Below, one piece after another: positions 28,303 through 56,900 of a DNA stretch of 64,000 bases. Position 1 is the stretch's first letter, and each line of letters starts with the position of its first letter. Source of the DNA: Zancudomyces culisetae HAW-14-8. Taxonomy: Eukaryota; Fungi; Kickxellomycota. Both the position numbers and the translations under genes were made by a program. The stretch spans positions 1,798,001-1,862,000 of the forward strand of contig JBNJNM010000021.1 in assembly GCA_052426225.1 (NCBI GenBank). Reading direction: 5' to 3'. The notes beneath the pieces are model-generated. The model was not told where the DNA came from, did no database searches, and saw only the letters and a program-made list of their open reading frames with translations.

Positions 28303-31300
28303 ATGCAAAACAACGAACGATCTTCGCTCAGTAGGTCCACGCCAACACCTGGATTTTCCCTGAAACACATAGACAAGCAATACACACCGCTGTTACCGCC
28401 AAACAGTAAAGAAAAATATCTAGCACATGCAACTTTTAGACATATAGAAAGCGATGGTAATGGTAATTCACAAAAGGTGCCAGACAGCGCCAACAACATA
28501 AACAACAACACAAGTGTTCCGAATGCCTCGAGTTTACCAAATCTGGCAACACTATTTGAATATTGTGCTAGAGGAGACTTGGAAAAGCTTCAGAGCTTGA
28601 TACCACACAATGACACGGCTCTTAATGCATGTGATGACAATGGTATAACGCTACTTATGTTGGCTTCTAGTAATGGCTATGATAAAATTATATCATGGCT
28701 GTGTAAACGTGATACTGTAAATCTAAATCAGAGAGGTAAGTCGGCAAACACAACTATTTTATAATATATATTATTATGTGTAATGAAATAAAAGAGTAAA
28801 ATGTGTGTATACACAACAAAACAGATAATAGAGGAGATACAGCATTACATTACGCAGCCATGGGTCGGCATCACAAAAGTGTAGAGTTATTGATTGTATT
28901 TGGGGCAAGTGTAAACATAGAAAACATGGTAAGTAGTTCTTTTTTTTGTATTACAGCGTATCGGGGGGGGGGGGGGTTGTATTTTGAAGAGGATCGCTAC
29001 TATAAACCTTTGCATTCGCATTTACATTCACATTTAACCAAAAAAGATAATTACATCATCTAAATTCTAGCTACATAAACAAAAAAAAATAGGTTGGTGC
29101 AAGGCCTTTACAAGCGGCTTCGTTTTATGGATGCCCAAAATGTGTCGAAAAGATATTGTTAGGCGGTGACTTAAATGTAAACCACAAAGACTGCAGGGGT
29201 GAAACAGCATTGATGTTGGCAGCCTACAAGGGCTACAATGCAGTTGTATATCAATTGCTGCTACGGAATGCCAAAACAAAAAAGTTCGATAAGGTACACA
29301 CCCTAGTTTTATACAGGACTATTATTTATTTAGTAAATATATCAGACCTAACACCTAATACCGATACTTGTTGTAAATACTGATAGGCGGGATGGTCAGC
29401 ACTAATGTTGGCAGCATACACAGGAAAAATTGGAGTGTGTCATGCAATACTGGATTATGAACTGAAGGTTGGTGTAAAACCCGGCTCTCATAGACAGATT
29501 GTTGCTGAGTTGGCTGCTAAGGCTGGGTATCGTGAGATTTCCGAAATAGTAAATGAATATGAATCTAGGCAAAGCAGTACCACACATTCGATCAAAGGTG
29601 ATAACAAACGTATTGAGAGGAGCATTCCGTCCACTAAAGAGACTCCTCAAGACGAAAAAAAACAATCCTTGCGAGATGAATCGAATGACATCCAAGGAGC
29701 TGTAGAACCACGTCGAAATGAAAATGCTGATATTGATATTTCTCAAAGAGTTGAAAATATATTAGCAGACGGTTTGGATACAATAAAAAAAGCTTCCCAT
29801 ATACCTATGGAAAATAGTGGTCTGTACAAACCTAGTACTGAACGGATAGAGATGCCTAGGGTTACTAGTATATTTGAAAATAAAACAAATAACCTCGAAG
29901 GTGGCGCAAACGCTTCACGGCAAATTTCGGAGAATGTGGAAAATATAAATCGACAACCTATTACAGGCAGCAGTAATAAAAGTGAGTTCAAAGATCAAGA
30001 GCACCAAGACACTTCAACTCGGAACTTCACTACGCTTGCAAGGGAATTTAATAGTAACGAAGAAAATACACCAGAAATGCACAAAGTGGATACAAGCACC
30101 TTTGTAGAGGCCACACGTGGATTAGAACCAGAAGTGTCATCGATGCAGGGTGCTCATAATAATCCAAAGGTGTTGTCAAATACACAAGAAAGCAAAAAAA
30201 GTATGCATAAACCCAATTCAATCGATGTTGGTGGCGCACACTCCCAGATATATACCGATAGATGCGTAAGCAAAGAGAACAAGTTACATCAAAACTCGAA
30301 TGTGTTGAATGGTGGTTTAGAAATCCAGGCAGTGGCGAGCAACACAGTTGCAAAAGGTTTTGGTAAACCAAACGCATCGTTTACCACTAGTCAAAAACCA
30401 ACAAGTATTGCGTCAAAAGGGAGAAACGTGCAAGGAGAGACAGTAGAAAACTCGTTTAAGAGATCTCATATCCAATTGGGTTCAGCTCGAGAACATGCTG
30501 GTGATCCGGTTGTGGTACCAAACTCACATAATAACTTTGAGCATTTGAAATCACTCTCACAAAAGATGGACAAGGAGCAAGTTGGTGGTAACAGTGAAGA
30601 TATTTCTTTACTACGAGCTAGAGTAAAGAATATAATAAGCAAAGACTTCAAGATTATCACACCCATGGATTATTCAAAGAAGATAAAAGATATTGTAAAA
30701 CACGAACCAGAGGGAAAAATTGATGTTCAAGACAAGATCTTATCTAGGCTACCCTCACAAGATGAAAAACAAGCTACCTCTGGTGGGGTTTGTCCTGGCG
30801 AGACACAAAACCCAAATACAAGCGTGGTACAAGCTGCACCAAGCGATAAGTTTATCAGTCTTCAAAAAAAGGCATCTGATATTGTACAATCTAACATTTT
30901 AGACAGAGATTCAGATACACCATCAGCTGCAATAGGATTGTTGCAGCATCTTGGGGGTGTTGAAAATAGTTGTAACAAAAATGGCACTGCAAACACTGAA
31001 AGTATGGATAAGAATACTCATAGAGACCCAAGCGTTGAACAAGTAATGAAATCATACAAACCTCTACCTACACCGATGCCGAAAAGTCGGGTGAGCATTT
31101 ACAACAACTCTAGCCAAGAACCAGCGGTTAATAACGACGAGTTATTGGACACCGAGAAAAAAATGCAGACGGCTACTAGTATAGAAAGGTATGATATACC
31201 AACATTAGGTTAATAATAGGTATGACGGCTCCCAACCTTTTTATACTGTGCTCGTGTGTCTTGTTTGTGTTTTATTTTTTCTTTCTACTTGATATTAAGC

Positions 31301-34300
31301 AACATTAAAATATCATTAACATATTAAATAAACGTGAAGCATAAGGAATCTAAAAGCAAAAACAATATATAAAAAATATTCACATAGATTTAACGAGAGT
31401 AATGTGCAAATAAACGTGGTGGACAACAGAGTGGACCCAAACCCCATGCACAAAAATCAGACGGAGTTTTTAATAATGGATAACCAAACTACGTCTAAAG
31501 CCAAAGAAAGCCAAGCTGAACTCAGTAGTATACCAAGTCATAGCGAACATTTAAATGGCGCTACTCAAGAAAATGTGGTTTCTGAGAAAAAGGAAGAAAC
31601 AAGCGTAAGCAAAATGAGAAAGTATTTTTTGCAGAAAAAGAAAGAGAGGAAAAACCAACTTGTAGGCAAAAACGCTGCTGATGGATTGATTTCCAAGTCA
31701 TGGCGCATTTTTAGCAAAGTGGTAACAGGATTTATACCTAGTTTTGTGATTAGAAAATGCAAAAATACACAAGATGACGAAAGAGTTCAGGCGTGGAGAG
31801 AAAAGATAACATTGTGTTTGCTAATATTATGCATGTGTGGTGCTATGGTGTTCTTCACTTTTGGCTTAACACAGTTATTTTGCGTTTACAGCGAACCCAT
31901 CGATACGTACGGGTTGCAAAAAAACCACGGCGCAAGGAGCAAAAAAAGATATGTTTCGGTTTATGGGAGCATATACGATGTAACGAACGGTTTTGGAATA
32001 CCAAATCATCCCAGGGTAAATGCCACATTGATTGGAAGCGACATTTCAAGATTTTTTTCCACGACATATCCCAGAGCAGAAAAGTGTAAGTTTTGGCCGG
32101 TTGGAAAGTCGCCAAGTACGTGTCTCTTTAACGATGGTAAATTTTGCCACAATTCGGCTACCATTGGAAACACGCTCAGTGGACTGGATACAAATAAAAA
32201 AATTACATACCAATGGAACGATATCTACAACAAAAAATACTATCTCTTTGTTTACAATGGCAGTGTATTCAATGTGTACAACTACCTGGAACGGAGTTTG
32301 GTAAACAGAACAGGGTATTTGGGAGCTCCACACATAACGGATAGCATAATACAAATGGTGGGGACAGACGCCACTCAGTATATCAACAGCAAGAGTGAAT
32401 TAAAGCAACTTGTTAGTTGTTTCTATGCACAATATTTGGTTGGTGTGGTAGACGGAACACCAGTTGGTTGTATTCTGGTAAACGGCTTGCTAGCAGTAAG
32501 TATGATGATGGTTGGGATGGTGACACTCACAAAGTTTTTTTGTGCAGTGCTTTTTAACTGGACATATAAATGGCGGTTCTGCAGAAATTACAATAATATA
32601 TATACTATGCGTGACAAGAATCATAATGAAGTTCACGAGTTGCCCTATGTGCTGATACTGGTTACGTGTTATTCGGAGGGCAAGGATTCGCTAAAAAAGA
32701 CTTTGGATTCTATAGCTGAAACGTACTATCCAGAACCAAACAAGGTATTGGTAGTCATTGCAGATGGAATGGTGAGTGGTGAAGATGAAAATAAGAGTAC
32801 CCCTGAAATTGTGCTTGAGCTGATGGGAGTTAACAACCCATCAGACATGCGTGCTCATAATCCATACAGTGATGATCAAAATAGCGCTGCAAGAAAACAG
32901 TCAGAAGATCCCAGACCTCTTGCATACAAGTCTATTGGGCATGGCGAACATGGTTATAACAACGCCAAGGTGTATGGTGGAGTTTACAATGCAAGTATTG
33001 GGAACAAAATCAATATGCTTGCGGTGATCAAAACAGGAAACTCTGTTGAGATCAGTAACAACAGTAGCAAACCTGGAAATCGTGGAAAACGCGATTCTCA
33101 GCTAATAATAATGCAGTGGCTTAAAAAGGCGTGTTTAAACGAACCCATGACACCACTAGAGTTTGAGTTGACCGAGATGCTTTTTGAGGTTTGCAAAATA
33201 CGACCTGATGTATTGGAGCTTATTTTGATGATTGACGCAGATACCAAGGTGGAAAAAAGAAGTTTGTGTTATATGATTAGTGCTATGATGGATGATTACA
33301 AAATAATGGGAATTTGTGGAGAGACGCAGATAGAAAACAAAAGCGAGAGCTTCATAACAAAGATTCAAGTTTTTGAATACTTTATATCACACAATTTGAG
33401 CAAATCATTTGAATCGGTTTGGGGAACGGTCACCTGTTTACCAGGCTGCTTCTCTATGTACAGAGCATATTCGCTGATCGGAAACATAAAAACCCCGTTA
33501 TTTGTTTCTCCGGATGTTATATCATCTTACAGTTGTAATGAAGTGGTCACCCTCCACCAAAAAAATTTATTGTTACTTGGTGAAGATAGGTTTTTGACAA
33601 CCATTATGTTGAAAAACTTTCCCAACAGAAAGACAATATACCTACCTAGTGCGATTTGCAAAACAATTGTGCCAAGCACCTTTAAAGTATTGCTGTCACA
33701 GCGACGTAGATGGGTCAACTCAACGGTTCATAATCTAATGGAGCTTCTTCTGGTTTCTGAACTATGTGGTACTTTTTGCTTTTCAATGCAGTATATGGCC
33801 TTTGTCGATCTTGTGGGCAATTTCACGCTGCCAGTTTCCTTTTTTACAACAGTTTATATAGCTGCAAACATACTTGCACAGAAAGCTTTTAAGATGGGGG
33901 TATGGCTGATTTTCACAATTGTCGTTGTATTTGGAGTTCATGCAGCCATAGTACTAACCATGTCTATAAGGAGGTATGTATATTTTTATTGGCTTCTCTG
34001 GTATATAATCTCAATTCCAATTTGGAATTTTGTGATTCCTACATATTCCTTTTGGAGATTTGATGACTTTTCGTGGGGAAAAACAAGAACTGTCATCGGT
34101 GATGCTAAAACAAATTCTGGTCCGAGTGGTGGTTCAAATATGGTTTCAAACATTGCGACTTTCTCAGCGCAGCAACAACAAAAACAACAACAACAGTTAA
34201 ATTCCTTGGATTCTGGTAAAAACCCGCGCAGAAACGATAAACATAACAAACCAGATATATCTAGCAACGTTCCTATAAAGCTATGGGCTGACTGGATTCG

Positions 34301-35366
34301 TGAAGGAAATGGTAGTCGTATTTACTCCAACAATATTCCAAACAACATTCCTATGGATGGACCTCCTTCCAATAGTTCCAACACTCGCTTCTTTAATAGA
34401 AATAGAATATCCAGAGCAATTGCACCATACATTCCCAGTATTGGGTTTTTTAATGAAAATAGAGTTTCTGTAAACTCAAATGGAAACTTTAGCACAAACG
34501 CAAACCCAAACGCAAACCCAAACGCAAACCCAAACGCAAACCCAAACGCAAACCCAAACGCAAACCCAAACGCAAACCCAAATCCGAGCCCGATCCCGAT
34601 TGCAAACGCAAATGCAAACACAAACCCGAATGCAAACACGAATGCAAACCCGAATTTCAAACCTAATCTAAACACAAATCCAAATTCAAACCTAATTCTA
34701 GATCCAAATACTACCAACGCCGGTCTCATGAACAAGATCAGGTATAATTTCAAAAACTGGTACAACCGCAACTCGGCAACTTCTTCTGCAAATGGTAATT
34801 TTATGGAATACACCTACGAACCTGCTCACTACACCTCTCCAAACATAATTGATGCACAACCACAACCATATATGCGGACGCAACCACGGCAACAGTATAT
34901 ACAGCCACAACAGCAGCCGTGGCCCACCCCATGGGTACCTGTAATAGATCCCAATGCGTTTGAACAAAACAAAAATGCGCGTGTTAGAGTACAACCACCA
35001 GAGGTAGTTAGAGATAGCAACGTTAACTACCATCCACACAACCCGGTCGGAAATATAGCAACACTAAATGCTCCATTTGACCGTACAAACAATACCTATA
35101 ATGCACCTCTCGCTAACCACTATAGTCCAATTAATGCTGGCTCCACCAACCCTACTGCAAATCTTCCCAATGTATACAGTGGTACTAATCGTTATCCTGC
35201 ATTTAATCCCGCTAATAATGGAAACTACTATGGCAATAACAATAATTTTCAAAATCAGTACAACAATAGACCCCAGGTTAATAATGATCGTGAAGCAGCC
35301 GGGCAAAACACTTACTCCACTATCCCTGTGCCACCAATTTTGGGATCACATAAAAGCACTCGATAG
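28303..35366 (+). CDS. Ankyrin-repeat-fused class IV (Chs3-like) chitin synthase, ~2172 aa. Exons 28303-28735, 28825-28928, 29093-29293, 29387-31188, 31388-35366
   Basis: Ankyrin motifs (GITLLMLAS, GDTALHYAA, GARPLQAAS, GETALMLAA, GWSALMLAA). A phase-2 intron GTATGA...CATAG joins to the CHS ORF. CHS motifs AWREK, cytochrome-b5-like region, KPGNRGKRDSQ, IDADT, IQVFEY, CLPGCF, LGEDR, QRRRW and DDFSWG. Exon lengths sum to 6519 nt. The CHS call is near-certain; the fusion is a splice inference. Confidence 0.8.
34497..34580 (+). repeat. (AACGCAAACCCA)7 coding repeat encoding (NANP)7
   Basis: Seven perfect 12-mers in the chitin synthase C-terminal tail, followed by degenerate copies. Confidence 0.95.
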
Positions 35367-35694: not shown

Positions 35695-36543
35695 ATGAAT
35701 CAAGTATTAGCTCGTAAGCATGTTTACTATGAATATTTCTCATATCCTTTAATTTATAAAACAGAAATGTAAATGAACATCAAAAACCACTTTTTGGAAA
35801 TAGGTCCCATCGTATTTTTCGGCCCATCGGGCTCTGGAAAGAGTACATTGCTGAAGCTACTATTTAATGAATTCCCGAATCAATTTGGATTCAGTATTTC
35901 TCGTAAGGAATTTTGGTTTGTTAATTCTCGATATATCCATTCATCGGAATATGTACTAACTATAACCTTTAAAAAAAATACAAATTAATATTGTAGACAC
36001 AACGAGAGCTCCTAGGAAAGGAGAGACAAACGGTATTGAATACCACTTTGTCACTAGAGATGAATTCCTCGAAGGCGTCAAAAAAAACGAGTTTATAGAG
36101 CACGCTGAATTTTCAGGAAATCTTTATGGAACCTCAATAAAGGCTGTAAAGGATGTAATCGAATCTGGAAAGACCTGTGTATTAGACATTGAAATGGTAT
36201 GTCGCACTTACTCTTACAGTACTGTTATGAATACAGCTATAGAAATCTAACATTTAATCTTCATGACTAATTCCTAACATAGCAAGGAGTAATGCAAGTC
36301 AAAAAAACGGATCTCAATCCGCGAATTATTTTTATTTCACCGCCATCAATGGAGATACTTAAAGAACGTCTAGTTAATCGAAATACCGATTCGGAGGATG
36401 CGATTAGAAAGAGGCTTGATACAGCGATCAAAGAGATGGAGTACGGCAAGTCCAGCGGTGCCTTTGATTTTCACGTTGTAAACGATAACTTGGATAGTGC
36501 ATACGAAAAGTTAAAAGGTTTTATTTTCAATACCACACAGTGA
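35695..36543 (+). CDS. GUK1: Guanylate kinase. Exons 35695-35713, 35804-35902, 35997-36196, 36283-36543
   Basis: [10 protein letters not shown]-loop, [36 protein letters not shown] and VNDNLD. Confidence 0.95.
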
Positions 36544-53953: not shown

Positions 53954-56900
53954 ATGGAGCGACAGTCGCGATATAATGGACGAACAGGCTCGATGGGAGG
54001 GGTGGACCAGTCGCAGCATATACGTATGGATGAAGAAGGGGATGATATTTTCAAGATGGGAGTAGGGTTTCAGGAGGATATTCAAAAAGGGCAGCAAGAT
54101 AGAGTGGGGCTGCAAGGGATAGAGGGAGAAGAAAAGGCGGAGAAGGTGGTGCTACGTGATAATATAACAGAACTTGACCAAACATTCGGGCGGAAGGTAT
54201 GGGTGGCAATTACATATATGCTTACGTTTTTGGTTCCGTCGTTTATGCTGCGGCGGTGTGGAATGAAGCGGGAGGATGTGCGGATGGCTTGGCGAGAGAA
54301 AGTGGCGATATGTATCATAATAGTGTGGATCTGGATAGTGATGCTGTTTTTGATTATCGGGTTGGGACTGCTCCTGTGTCCCAAGCAGAATGTATATACA
54401 ACAGTAGAAGTTGGTTACAATGCCGATCCAGAAGGAGCATTTACATCTGTTAGAGGAAAAGTATATGACATTACAAACTTTGTCAAACAGAGACACGGGA
54501 TGAGTGGCAATTTAGCATCAACAGAGTCTATGATGTACTATGCAGGGTACGAGACAAACGCAAGCTTTCCCTTGGAGGTGCGAGTGGCGTGTCCAGATCT
54601 GGTGAGCAGCGACGACGATCCAAACTACACAATGTATCTGAGTTCAGAGAACATTGAAGAAATGTATAACTACTGGGTTTCACACAAGGTTGGATCAGTA
54701 GCAAACTCGCAAGAGCTGAGTGATGTTAATTTTTACTTTAAATATTGGGTGCCAAAAATGCAACAGTATTACAAGGGTGAACTGGTATGGGATATATCGA
54801 CATTGGAGAGCTGGCACAAGAATAACGGAATGTACTGGCGGGTAATTAATGGAGAGGTATACAATTTTGATGATTATTTCTACACATCGCAACAGCCATT
54901 CAATGCGAATCTCAAGAAATGGAATTTCCTAGACAAGGGGTTGACGGGGATTATCGATGATGGTGGGGTTGGGACAGTAGACATTAGTGACAAGTGGGCC
55001 AAACTGAGCATAAGTGATAGTGACCGAGCAAACAATCTGAAATGTATGCGTAATCTGTTCTATGTGGGACGAGTAGACACTCGAAAGAGTACCAAGTGTT
55101 TGTTTATGAACTATATGTTGTTGGCGTTTGCATGTTTGTTGGTGTTGGTTGTGCTGATCAAGTTTATGGCGAGTTTACAGTTTGGAACAGCAAAAAAAGT
55201 TGGGCGACAAACAAAATTTGTGTTGTGTCAAGTGCCGTGCTATACTGAGGGTGAGGAGAGTATGAGTAAAACGATTAACTCACTGGCCAATATGGAATAC
55301 GATGATAAGAAGCGGCTGATAATGGTAATTTGCGATGGAAACATAGTAGGAAGCGGAAACGAAAAGTCGACGCCCAAGATAGTTCTGGATCTGTTGGGCG
55401 TGGATCCAGAGATGGAGCCTCCAAGTCGTGATGCGATAGCGGTTGCAGAAGGATCAATGATGCACAACCGAGGCAAGGTGTACAGTGGGCTTTATGACTA
55501 CGAAGGTCATCTCGTGCCGTTTGTTGTGGTGGTCAAGGTAGGCAACCGACATGAAAAGAACAAGCCGGGAAACCGAGGCAAGCGTGACTCGCAGATTTTG
55601 TTGATGCGATTTTTGAACAAGGTGTATTTCGAGCTACCAATGACACCACTTGAACTTGAGTTGAACCATCACATGACACATATTATTGGAATTCCACCAC
55701 AGTACTTTGAATACCTGCTGCAGGTTGATGCAGACACAGTAGTCGGGCCAGAGTCAATGTCGCGATTGGTGGCGCATTGTGTGGCAGACAACAACATTGC
55801 AGGGATATGCGGTGAGACAAGAATTGCCAATGAACAAAATACGTGGGTGACAATGGTGCAGGTATATGAGTACTACATTTCACATTTCCTGTCTAAATCG
55901 TTTGAGTCATTGTTTGGGTCAGTTACGTGTCTTCCTGGTTGTTTCTGTATGTATCGACTGGTATCCAGTAAGGACAAGAAGCCAATTCTAATCAACAAAC
56001 AAGTGGTCGATGCGTATTCCGAGCGACACGTCGACACGCTACACAAAAAGAACCTGCTGAGTCTGGGTGAGGATCGTTATCTTACAACGTTGATGTTGAG
56101 GCAATTCCCACACTACAAGCTGAAGTTTGCACGCGACGCATTCTGCTATACCACAGTGCCTGAGTCGTGGTCAGTGCTGCTCTCACAACGGCGACGGTGG
56201 ATCAATTCAACAGTGCACAATCTGCTCGAGCTGATTATGATTGAAAATCTATGTGGATTCTGCTGCTTCTCGATGCGGTTTGTAGTGTTTTTGGACTTGT
56301 TTGGTACAGTAACTATGCCAACTGTTCTGCTGTACTTCATCTACTTACTGGTTGCCTCTATCACCAAATTCAGCACTGTCGGATTCATCTCGCTGATTAT
56401 TCTGGGTGCAGTCTACGGCTTGCAGGTTGTAGTCTTTTTGATACGTGGCGAATGGCAGCACATTGGCTGGCTGATTATCTACCTGCTATCGTTCCCGCTG
56501 TGGTCGTTTGTTTTACCTATTTACTCGTTCTGGCACTTTGACGATTTCAGCTGGGGCAACACCCGTACAGTTGTTGGTGAACGTGGTAAGATTAAGCTGA
56601 TTGTTGCCAACGATTATCAATTCAACATTGACGACATTCCTCTCATCACGTGGAGTGAGTATGAAGCAAATCTCATTGCTCTTGGAACCGTCAACTCGCC
56701 TCCTCAGGTCAACCCTTCCTACGAATATGCCGAATCTTACACCTACGGTAATGACTTCAATCGTTTCTCCACTGCTTCTCCTCAGCTCAACCCTCACGCC
56801 TCGGTTGTTGTAGGTGCTGTTCCTCAAAACTTTTCCCCAAGTAGAGCCTCCTCTCCTTCTGTTTCCACCTATTCTTCTCCACCTTCTCTCTCCAACTACC

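Follow-up and report, generated by a model that had tools for sequence, protein, structure and literature searches.

Do ankyrin-repeat exons lying directly upstream of a chitin synthase (CHS) open reading frame (ORF) belong to the same gene? The question is raised by positions 28303-35366, on the forward strand, of a 64,000-nucleotide stretch of the Zancudomyces culisetae HAW-14-8 genome; this whole stretch is called the window below, and positions refer to it unless another contig is named. An earlier note on the same DNA had joined the two parts into one spliced gene for an ankyrin-bearing chitin synthase (Ank-CHS). We regard it as highly probable that the region is indeed one five-exon gene, predicted to encode an Ank-CHS of about 2172 amino acids (aa), because ankyrin repeats and CHS share one polypeptide in relatives and the window CHS groups with that clade. 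Z. culisetae is a gut fungus of the order Harpellales (Kickxellomycotina), and the gene would in all likelihood represent this order in an old Ank-CHS branch within the division-2/superclass-IV enzymes. The single gene of the earlier note is thus retained on account of the conserved architecture of the relatives, and not on account of the splice arithmetic.

The two parts of the predicted protein

Altogether the five predicted exons contain 6519 nucleotides (nt), that is 2172 codons and a TAG stop, with no internal stop codon. The divisibility by three and the open frame had been claimed before, and recomputation shows both to be correct. The four introns (89, 164, 93 and 199 bp) all begin with GT and end with AG. 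Throughout, individual exons or ORFs served as queries in the database searches, and the joined coding sequence was used only for length, stop codons and linker composition.

The enzyme part is a division-2/superclass IV chitin synthase of the Chs3 type. The Pfam search of the window ORF gives Chitin_synth_2 (PF03142) with an E-value of 5.6e-186 at residues 410-904, CHS4 (PF22997) with 44.1 bits against a cut-off of 27, and a weak Cyt-b5 match of 27.5 bits for the whole protein, with no single stretch passing alone. In the same search the division-1 domains PF08407 and PF01644 are not listed for this ORF, and neither Myosin_head nor DEK_C is found. Counted from the ATG at 31446, the catalytic motifs are intact: DAD at 597, QVFEY at 641, EDR at 713, QRRRW at 752 and SWG at 876. 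Two hydrophobic segments stand ahead of the catalytic domain, and the N-terminal CHS region is 32% identical to its Coemansia counterpart over 303 aa (E 6e-59), with Cys and Trp columns that are invariant in the family alignment. After the catalytic domain follows a tail of about 370 aa with 23% Asn and 13% Pro, including (NANP)7 at 34497-34580 (+). This long predicted tail is specific to Z. culisetae, other Ank-CHS proteins stopping soon after the catalytic domain.

The ankyrin module is real as well, with 6-7 repeats instead of the 5-6 counted before, as the first 59 aa of exon 4, judged both from alignment and by eye, are the last repeat and a C-terminal cap. This piece is 32% identical to residues 246-304 of Coemansia P0005 (59 aa, E 8e-10). 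The alignment consensus of the last repeat and cap in the family reads D..GWTALM.AAY.GR ... A..LA.DAGY..VADM, and its counterpart in the window is AGWSALMLAAYTGK ... AELAAKAGYREISEIV; the window module is collinear with the family module. The cap is followed by a non-conserved linker, 75% polar, which spans exons 4 and 5 and extends to the first conserved motif of the CHS. A polar, low-complexity linker of about 550 aa had been described; its polar nature stands, and its non-conserved length is 641 aa when the start of exon 5 is included.

Relatives and phylogenetic placement

In 5.8 billion proteins, the best non-self matches of the CHS ORF are Coemansia proteins of 1300-1600 aa with Ank, CHS4 and Chitin_synth_2 domains, and Endogone comes next. 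Among 1.84 billion representatives searched by HMMER, the top three matches all belong to the ankyrin-bearing clade, namely P0018, then P0241 and P0242. The last two carry Ank repeats themselves, and P0018 is an N-terminally truncated partial Coemansia record, which the tree groups with the Ank-bearing Coemansia proteins. With the Endogone protein as seed, a further search brought in Calcarisporiella, Ambispora, Geosiphon and Syncephalis. Overall, the combination of Ank, CHS4 and Chitin_synth_2 is found in at least 14 Coemansia clusters, in these five other genera and in two environmental contigs, and at least two dozen Ank-CHS proteins are spread over several early-diverging phyla. Deposited examples are Coemansia P0005 and P0002, Endogone sp. 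FLAS-F59071 P0020, Calcarisporiella thermophila P0121, Ambispora leptoticha P0122, Geosiphon pyriformis P0123 and Syncephalis fuscata P0124. The relatives have a common order of Ank repeats, variable linker, transmembrane (TM) segment, CHS4 loop, second TM segment and catalytic domain. None of the Dikarya relatives met in these searches has Ank repeats.

In three cases both parts are located within a single ORF, so the fusion in the relatives does not depend on gene prediction. An uninterrupted ORF of 1437 aa in Coemansia sp. RSA 376 (L001:3489-7799) contains Ank_2 (5e-40) and the whole Chitin_synth_2 (7e-198); a single ORF in Endogone (L002:1320-3503) contains one Ank repeat, CHS4 and the first part of the CHS domain; and on the Logan contig L012 one ORF that covers both the Ank and the CHS domain encodes P0241. 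There is one member of a different kind, P0276 (1534 aa) from the representative library, which is placed inside the Ank-CHS clade and has an N-terminal extension of about 860 aa with no Ank match at E <= 1e-5; this could reflect loss, divergence or a faulty model. Most Coemansia Ank-CHS proteins bear the name 'ATP-dependent RNA helicase' at NCBI, apparently an annotation error that has spread from record to record.

These results change the novelty that the earlier note had assigned to the locus. It had proposed a lineage-specific CHS, which is not supported: Ank-CHS is present in Kickxellales, Syncephalis, Endogone, Calcarisporiella and Glomeromycotina, and in Rozella according to PMC5353729. 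In terms of phyla, the branch occurs in Zoopagomycota and Mucoromycota besides the published Rozella case. The earlier note had also known of no standard CHS class with N-terminal ankyrin repeats and had named a wide distribution of the architecture as evidence against its view; the databases hold many such proteins. As for the literature, Rozella allomycis EPZ33276.1 is given as an ankyrin-bearing class IV CHS and listed as a singleton by Liu et al. 2017 (PMC5353729, Table S3). The full-text literature search returned no discussion of Ank-CHS beyond this entry, and the word 'ankyrin' is absent from Goncalves et al. 2016 (PMC5122149), a 2025 review, a 2026 chytrid CHS paper and other CHS classification papers. 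The architecture is therefore already in the databases and barely described in the literature searched.

The catalytic-domain tree was rooted on the myosin-bearing CHSs, with supports given by the SH-like approximate likelihood-ratio test (SH-aLRT). The split between myosin-CHS and superclass IV has a support of 100, with the window on the IV side. Within superclass IV, this tree recovers the Ank clade with 92 and groups the window with Kickxellales with 98; a second, similar tree brings the ranges to 87-92 and 97-98. The Ank-CHS clade branches beside, not within, the canonical IVa and IVb groups of Goncalves et al. (PMC5122149). The 'class IV' assignment made before is thus roughly right, in that the gene belongs to superclass IV, on a branch beside canonical IVa/IVb. 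The CHS-domain phylogeny that had been named as a check thus places the window CHS with the Ank-bearing clade, subject to the long-branch caveat considered below.

The genome holds at least 11 Chitin_synth_2 loci, searched in the 27-Mb, 25-contig assembly in which the window is C21:1798001-1862000. Nine other CHS loci were placed, of which three fall among the canonical class IV groups and six among the myosin-type enzymes. A second CHS catalytic domain is present in the window itself, at 55151-56668 (+) (G000:C21:1853151-1854668), with Chitin_synth_2 at 9.7e-225 in an open frame of 1177 aa; in the tree it groups with the myosin-type (class V/VII) enzymes.

One gene or two

Several observations weigh against a single gene of this clade, and they concern the placement, the ankyrin exons and the junction. 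In the placement, the branch of the window CHS is very long (1.4-1.9 substitutions per site), and when the Kickxellales are removed the catalytic domain falls to the base of superclass IV, so long-branch attraction is possible for this partition. For this reason the TM1-CHS4-TM2 region (297 columns, independent of the catalytic domain) was analysed separately. In its tree the window groups with Kickxellales at 91, and the pair is joined to the other Ank-CHS proteins at 89; removing the Kickxellales leaves the window as the sister of the Ank clade, with weak support (67). The highest identities of the window in this region are with the Ank-clade rows.

The second concern is with the ankyrin exons. 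A family Ank profile built on eight Ank-CHS members matches exon 3 at profile positions 3-68 (40.9 bits) and exon 4 at 69-123 (37.7 bits). Generic Ank proteins of the same genome score 71.5 bits in one piece, and exon by exon the locus is not the best Ank match within its own genome. The family profile does better than a single-module query only when the two exon pieces are summed. Since generic Ank loci score similarly, the profile result is mildly supportive and not exclusive. A reciprocal-best-hit test, in which one Coemansia Ank module was searched against the Z. culisetae genome, was discarded, as generic Ank genes outscored this locus.

The third concern is the junction between 31188 and 31388. 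For Z. culisetae the splicing of intron 4 is predicted, with boundaries that are splice-compatible only. The final 150 nt of the Ank frame, together with the open part of the CHS frame ahead of its first ATG, contain 7 GT and 8 AG. These form 56 pairs, of which 18 are in frame; a stricter splice consensus leaves 4 pairs, 2 of them in frame, one through a second in-frame acceptor at 31430. The in-frame GT-AG junction is therefore no better than chance, and splice arithmetic was dropped as statistical support for the fusion. It had also been stated that the CHS frame opens just after an in-frame TAG; the real in-frame stop is TGA at 31335-31337, and the TAG at 31385-31387 is the acceptor and out of frame. 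Left unspliced, intron 4 would contain the TAA of the Ank ORF (31213-31215), an AATAAA near 31328 and this TGA. AATAAA occurs in the window at 1.67 per kb. With this AATAAA in the spacer and the good context of the ATG at 31476 (A at -3, G at +4), a separate CHS transcript is physically possible. The G+C content (GC) of the spacer 31189-31387 is 0.27, compared with 0.25-0.34 in introns 1-3 and about 0.40 in exons, a comparison weakened by the A+T richness of the intergenic DNA here. Finally, no Harpellales orthologue for comparing the junction was found with the CHS ORF and the linker exon as queries in the 5.8 billion proteins and the 50% representative library, where close relatives may be hidden within the window protein's own cluster. 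The sole database match of the linker exon is Z. culisetae's own model P0240.

The public annotation of the locus has two proteins. The CHS ORF is 99% identical to the deposited Z. culisetae P0001, and the linker exon is 99% identical to P0240. P0240 (826 aa) passes the donor to the TAA at 31213, lacks the second Ank exon and includes a translated part of intron 3. P0001 (1020 aa) begins with the ATG at 31476, deletes the stretch with QVFEY, EDR and QRRRW, and continues into a guanylate kinase gene (Guanylate_kin 1.4e-37 at residues 904-1003). Both look like ab initio products without transcript support. As both are visibly defective, they carry no weight for or against the fusion, and the two-protein annotation was rejected as evidence for two genes. 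The guanylate kinase gene itself is located at 35773-36543 (+), has at least one intron and begins 406 bp past the CHS stop. Scattered differences of about 1-2% separate P0240 and P0001 from the window translation, many of them within the linker, which means that the public sequences were derived from a different isolate or assembly and that replacements are tolerated in the linker. Our result corrects the two public models, one an Ank protein minus a repeat and the other a 'chitin synthase 7' that lacks its catalytic core and is fused to guanylate kinase; most likely the two represent a single enzyme of 2172 aa.

The best surviving alternative to one gene is that a fission in Harpellales left two, an Ank protein of about 855 aa ending at the TAA 31213-31215 and a CHS of about 1300 aa starting at the ATG 31446 or 31476. 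The chance-level splice, the AATAAA at about 31328 with the good context of the ATG at 31476, and the two proteins of the public annotation all fit such a fission, but P0240 and P0001 are demonstrably wrong elsewhere. It would turn the 199-bp intron into a very short intergenic spacer, and room would have to be found within some 230-260 bp for both untranslated regions (3' and 5'), a promoter and a poly(A) site. Moreover, nearly all proteins of the clade that have their N-terminus carry the Ank repeats on the same polypeptide, three of them within single ORFs, with P0276 the sole exception. The Ank module of the window also retains the family-specific cap, which would be expected if it is still working with the CHS. 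Weighing these points, we consider two genes unlikely.

A mixed state, in which a full-length Ank-CHS messenger coexists with an intron-retaining, Ank-only form ending at 31213 and/or an internally initiated CHS without ankyrin repeats, would make the targeting module optional. Retention of intron 4 would give a stop 8 codons past the donor, and both the in-frame ATGs soon after the acceptor and the second in-frame acceptor at 31430 would suit it. Such isoforms are hypothetical, however, and intron retention is no option of this kind for relatives such as Coemansia, whose Ank-CHS is a single ORF, so the mixed state appears very unlikely. That the locus is a decaying, non-functional CHS copy, with the long branch due to relaxed constraint and the juxtaposition of Ank and CHS a remnant, can hardly be maintained: its terminal branch of 1.4-1.9 compares with 0.2-0.4 in the nine other CHS loci and no other complete CHS-domain match in the genome has so low a Chitin_synth_2 score, but 2172 codons are open in a 60% A+T context, none of the motifs DAD, QVFEY, EDR, QRRRW and SWG is broken, the N-terminal region has kept its conserved Cys and Trp columns, and fast evolution is a property of the clade, as the Kickxellales orthologues are also on a long stem.

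Layout, proposed role and known systems

The features of the one-gene model are listed in Table 1. Introns 1-3 are positioned at the boundaries of Ank repeats, and the acceptors of introns 1-4 have A-rich, not pyrimidine-rich, tracts upstream (ACAACAAAACAG, AAAAAAAAATAG, AAATACTGATAG and ATATTCACATAG).

Table 1. Predicted features of the Ank-CHS gene in window coordinates; a slash marks an exon-intron boundary
Feature	Position	Strand	Description
Exon 1	28303..28735	+	433 nt; start ATG, ~80-aa polar N-terminus, Ank repeats 1-2; phase 1 end AGAG/GTAAGT; Pfam Ank_2 2.5e-06, Ank_4, Ank
Intron 1	28736..28824	+	89 bp, GTAAGT..ACAG, GC 0.25; joined exons restore D-NRGDTALH repeat start
Exon 2	28825..28928	+	104 nt; Ank repeat 3; Pfam Ank 7e-09; absent from public model P0240
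Intron 2	28929..29092	+	164 bp, GTAAGT..ATAG; contains a G run, about 11 G
Exon 3	29093..29293	+	201 nt; Ank repeats 4-5; Pfam Ank 7.2e-09, Ank_2 1.6e-08
Intron 3	29294..29386	+	93 bp, GTACAC..GATAG; kept in part by public model P0240
Exon 4, whole	29387..31188	+	1802 nt, terminates AG/GTATGA; no Pfam family
Exon 4, first part	29387..29563	+	Final Ank repeat and C-terminal cap; family signature GWSALMLAAYTGK ... AELAAKAGYREISEIV
Exon 4, remainder	29564..31188	+	Polar non-conserved linker, no Pfam match; phase 2 end ...ATAGAAAG/GTATGA
Putative intron 4	31189..31387	+	199 bp, GTATGA..CACATAG, GC 0.27; splicing predicted from sequence
Exon 5, whole	31388..35366	+	3979 nt, begins after CACATAG/
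Exon 5, start	31388..31688	+	Linker remainder; in-frame ATGs 31446 and 31476, alternative stand-alone CHS starts
N-terminal CHS region, conserved	31689..32630	+	W..FS..VT motif, TM1 from about 31806, Cys-rich loop, TM2
CHS4 domain	32202-32444	+	Within Cys-rich loop with weak Cyt-b5-like match; Pfam 2.7e-11
Chitin_synth_2 catalytic domain	32631..34115	+	Pfam 5.6e-186; DAD, QVFEY, EDR, QRRRW, SWG; genome search gave identical coordinates
C-terminal tail	34116..35366	+	N/P/Q-rich low-complexity; (NANP)7 at 34497-34580; stop TAG 35364-35366

Translated into a protein, the one-gene model would give 6-7 cytosolic Ank repeats, a disordered-looking linker of about 640 aa, TM1, an extracytosolic Cys-rich loop of CHS4/cytochrome-b5-like character, TM2, the cytosolic GT2 CHS domain, C-terminal TM segments and the low-complexity tail. 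Because two hydrophobic segments flank the loop with the invariant Cys, the N-terminus, Ank module and linker are predicted to share the cytosolic side with the active site. Ankyrin repeats serve as scaffolds for protein binding. The module probably docks the enzyme to a partner: it would be a built-in platform of protein-protein interaction for a trafficking, anchoring or regulatory partner, or, alternatively, it may fold back on the catalytic domain. A module for interaction or targeting, as the earlier note had proposed, is a reasonable hypothesis.

The enzyme may also be handled as a Chs3-type cargo, as suggested by the head-to-head position of Ank-CHS and Chs7 in Kickxellales. In two genomes of this order (L001:931-7802 and L013:1-7123), Chs7, described in PMC11803449 as the endoplasmic reticulum export chaperone of Chs3, is divergently transcribed upstream of Ank-CHS. 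At both places Mpv17/PMP22 and Snf7 genes lie downstream, and the local synteny is conserved. A Chs7 gene adjoining the window gene was not found, the Chs7 homologues of Z. culisetae being on contigs C12 and C11.

In class V/VII chitin synthases a myosin motor gives a localisation and interaction role in cis, and for yeast Chs3 Chs4 and exomer give it in trans. Tentatively, Ank-CHS may be an ancient and formally unrecognised division-2 class, sister to canonical class IV, which would predate the split of Rozella, Zoopagomycota and Mucoromycota and would have been lost in Dikarya, its ankyrin platform taking over in cis part of a localisation and activation role of the Chs4/exomer type; Z. culisetae would then have a fast-evolving, greatly extended version. 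This is a proposal which we hold to be quite possible, with the balance slightly against it. The CHS classifications rest mainly on Dikarya and most of them omit the ankyrin-bearing type, whose members form one clade beside canonical class IV. Ank-CHS offers cell-wall biologists a Chs3-type enzyme that naturally comes with its own interaction module, and with it a way of asking what targets and activates class IV enzymes and what Dikarya lost or replaced. An old Ank-bearing branch beside class IV is modestly interesting and needs a proper phylogeny.

Compared with the deposited Ank-CHS proteins, the gene predicted in the window has the same domain order and the same signature of the terminal Ank repeat and cap, and its CHS groups with them in two independent alignment partitions. 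It differs in that a predicted 199-bp intron is all that links its two halves, that its linker (641 aa) and tail (about 370 aa) are much longer, that no other member of the set has so long a protein (about 2172 aa), that its CHS domain evolves much faster, and, from the Kickxellales members, in that Chs7 is a neighbour there and located elsewhere in Z. culisetae.

With canonical class IV, such as S. cerevisiae Chs3 and Aspergillus ChsD, it shares Chitin_synth_2 without division-1 domains, a CHS4/cytochrome-b5-like N-terminal region, the same catalytic motifs, the lack of myosin and DEK_C, and the placement in superclass IV. The canonical enzymes, in contrast, have no Ank repeats, and the Ank-CHS clade branches beside them; canonical yeast Chs3 relies on the separate partners Chs4/Skt5, exomer and Chs7. 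Canonical class IV copies (L003, L004 and L005) are also present in the Z. culisetae genome, as are six myosin-type CHS loci elsewhere in it. The class V/VII myosin-CHSs resemble the predicted window gene in having a cytosolic localisation or interaction module fused N-terminally to a division-2 CHS, whereas the module there is Myosin_head with DEK_C instead of Ank, and the clades are separated at a support of 100. Since the fusion of a targeting module is already known from these enzymes, Ank-CHS is not a new principle.

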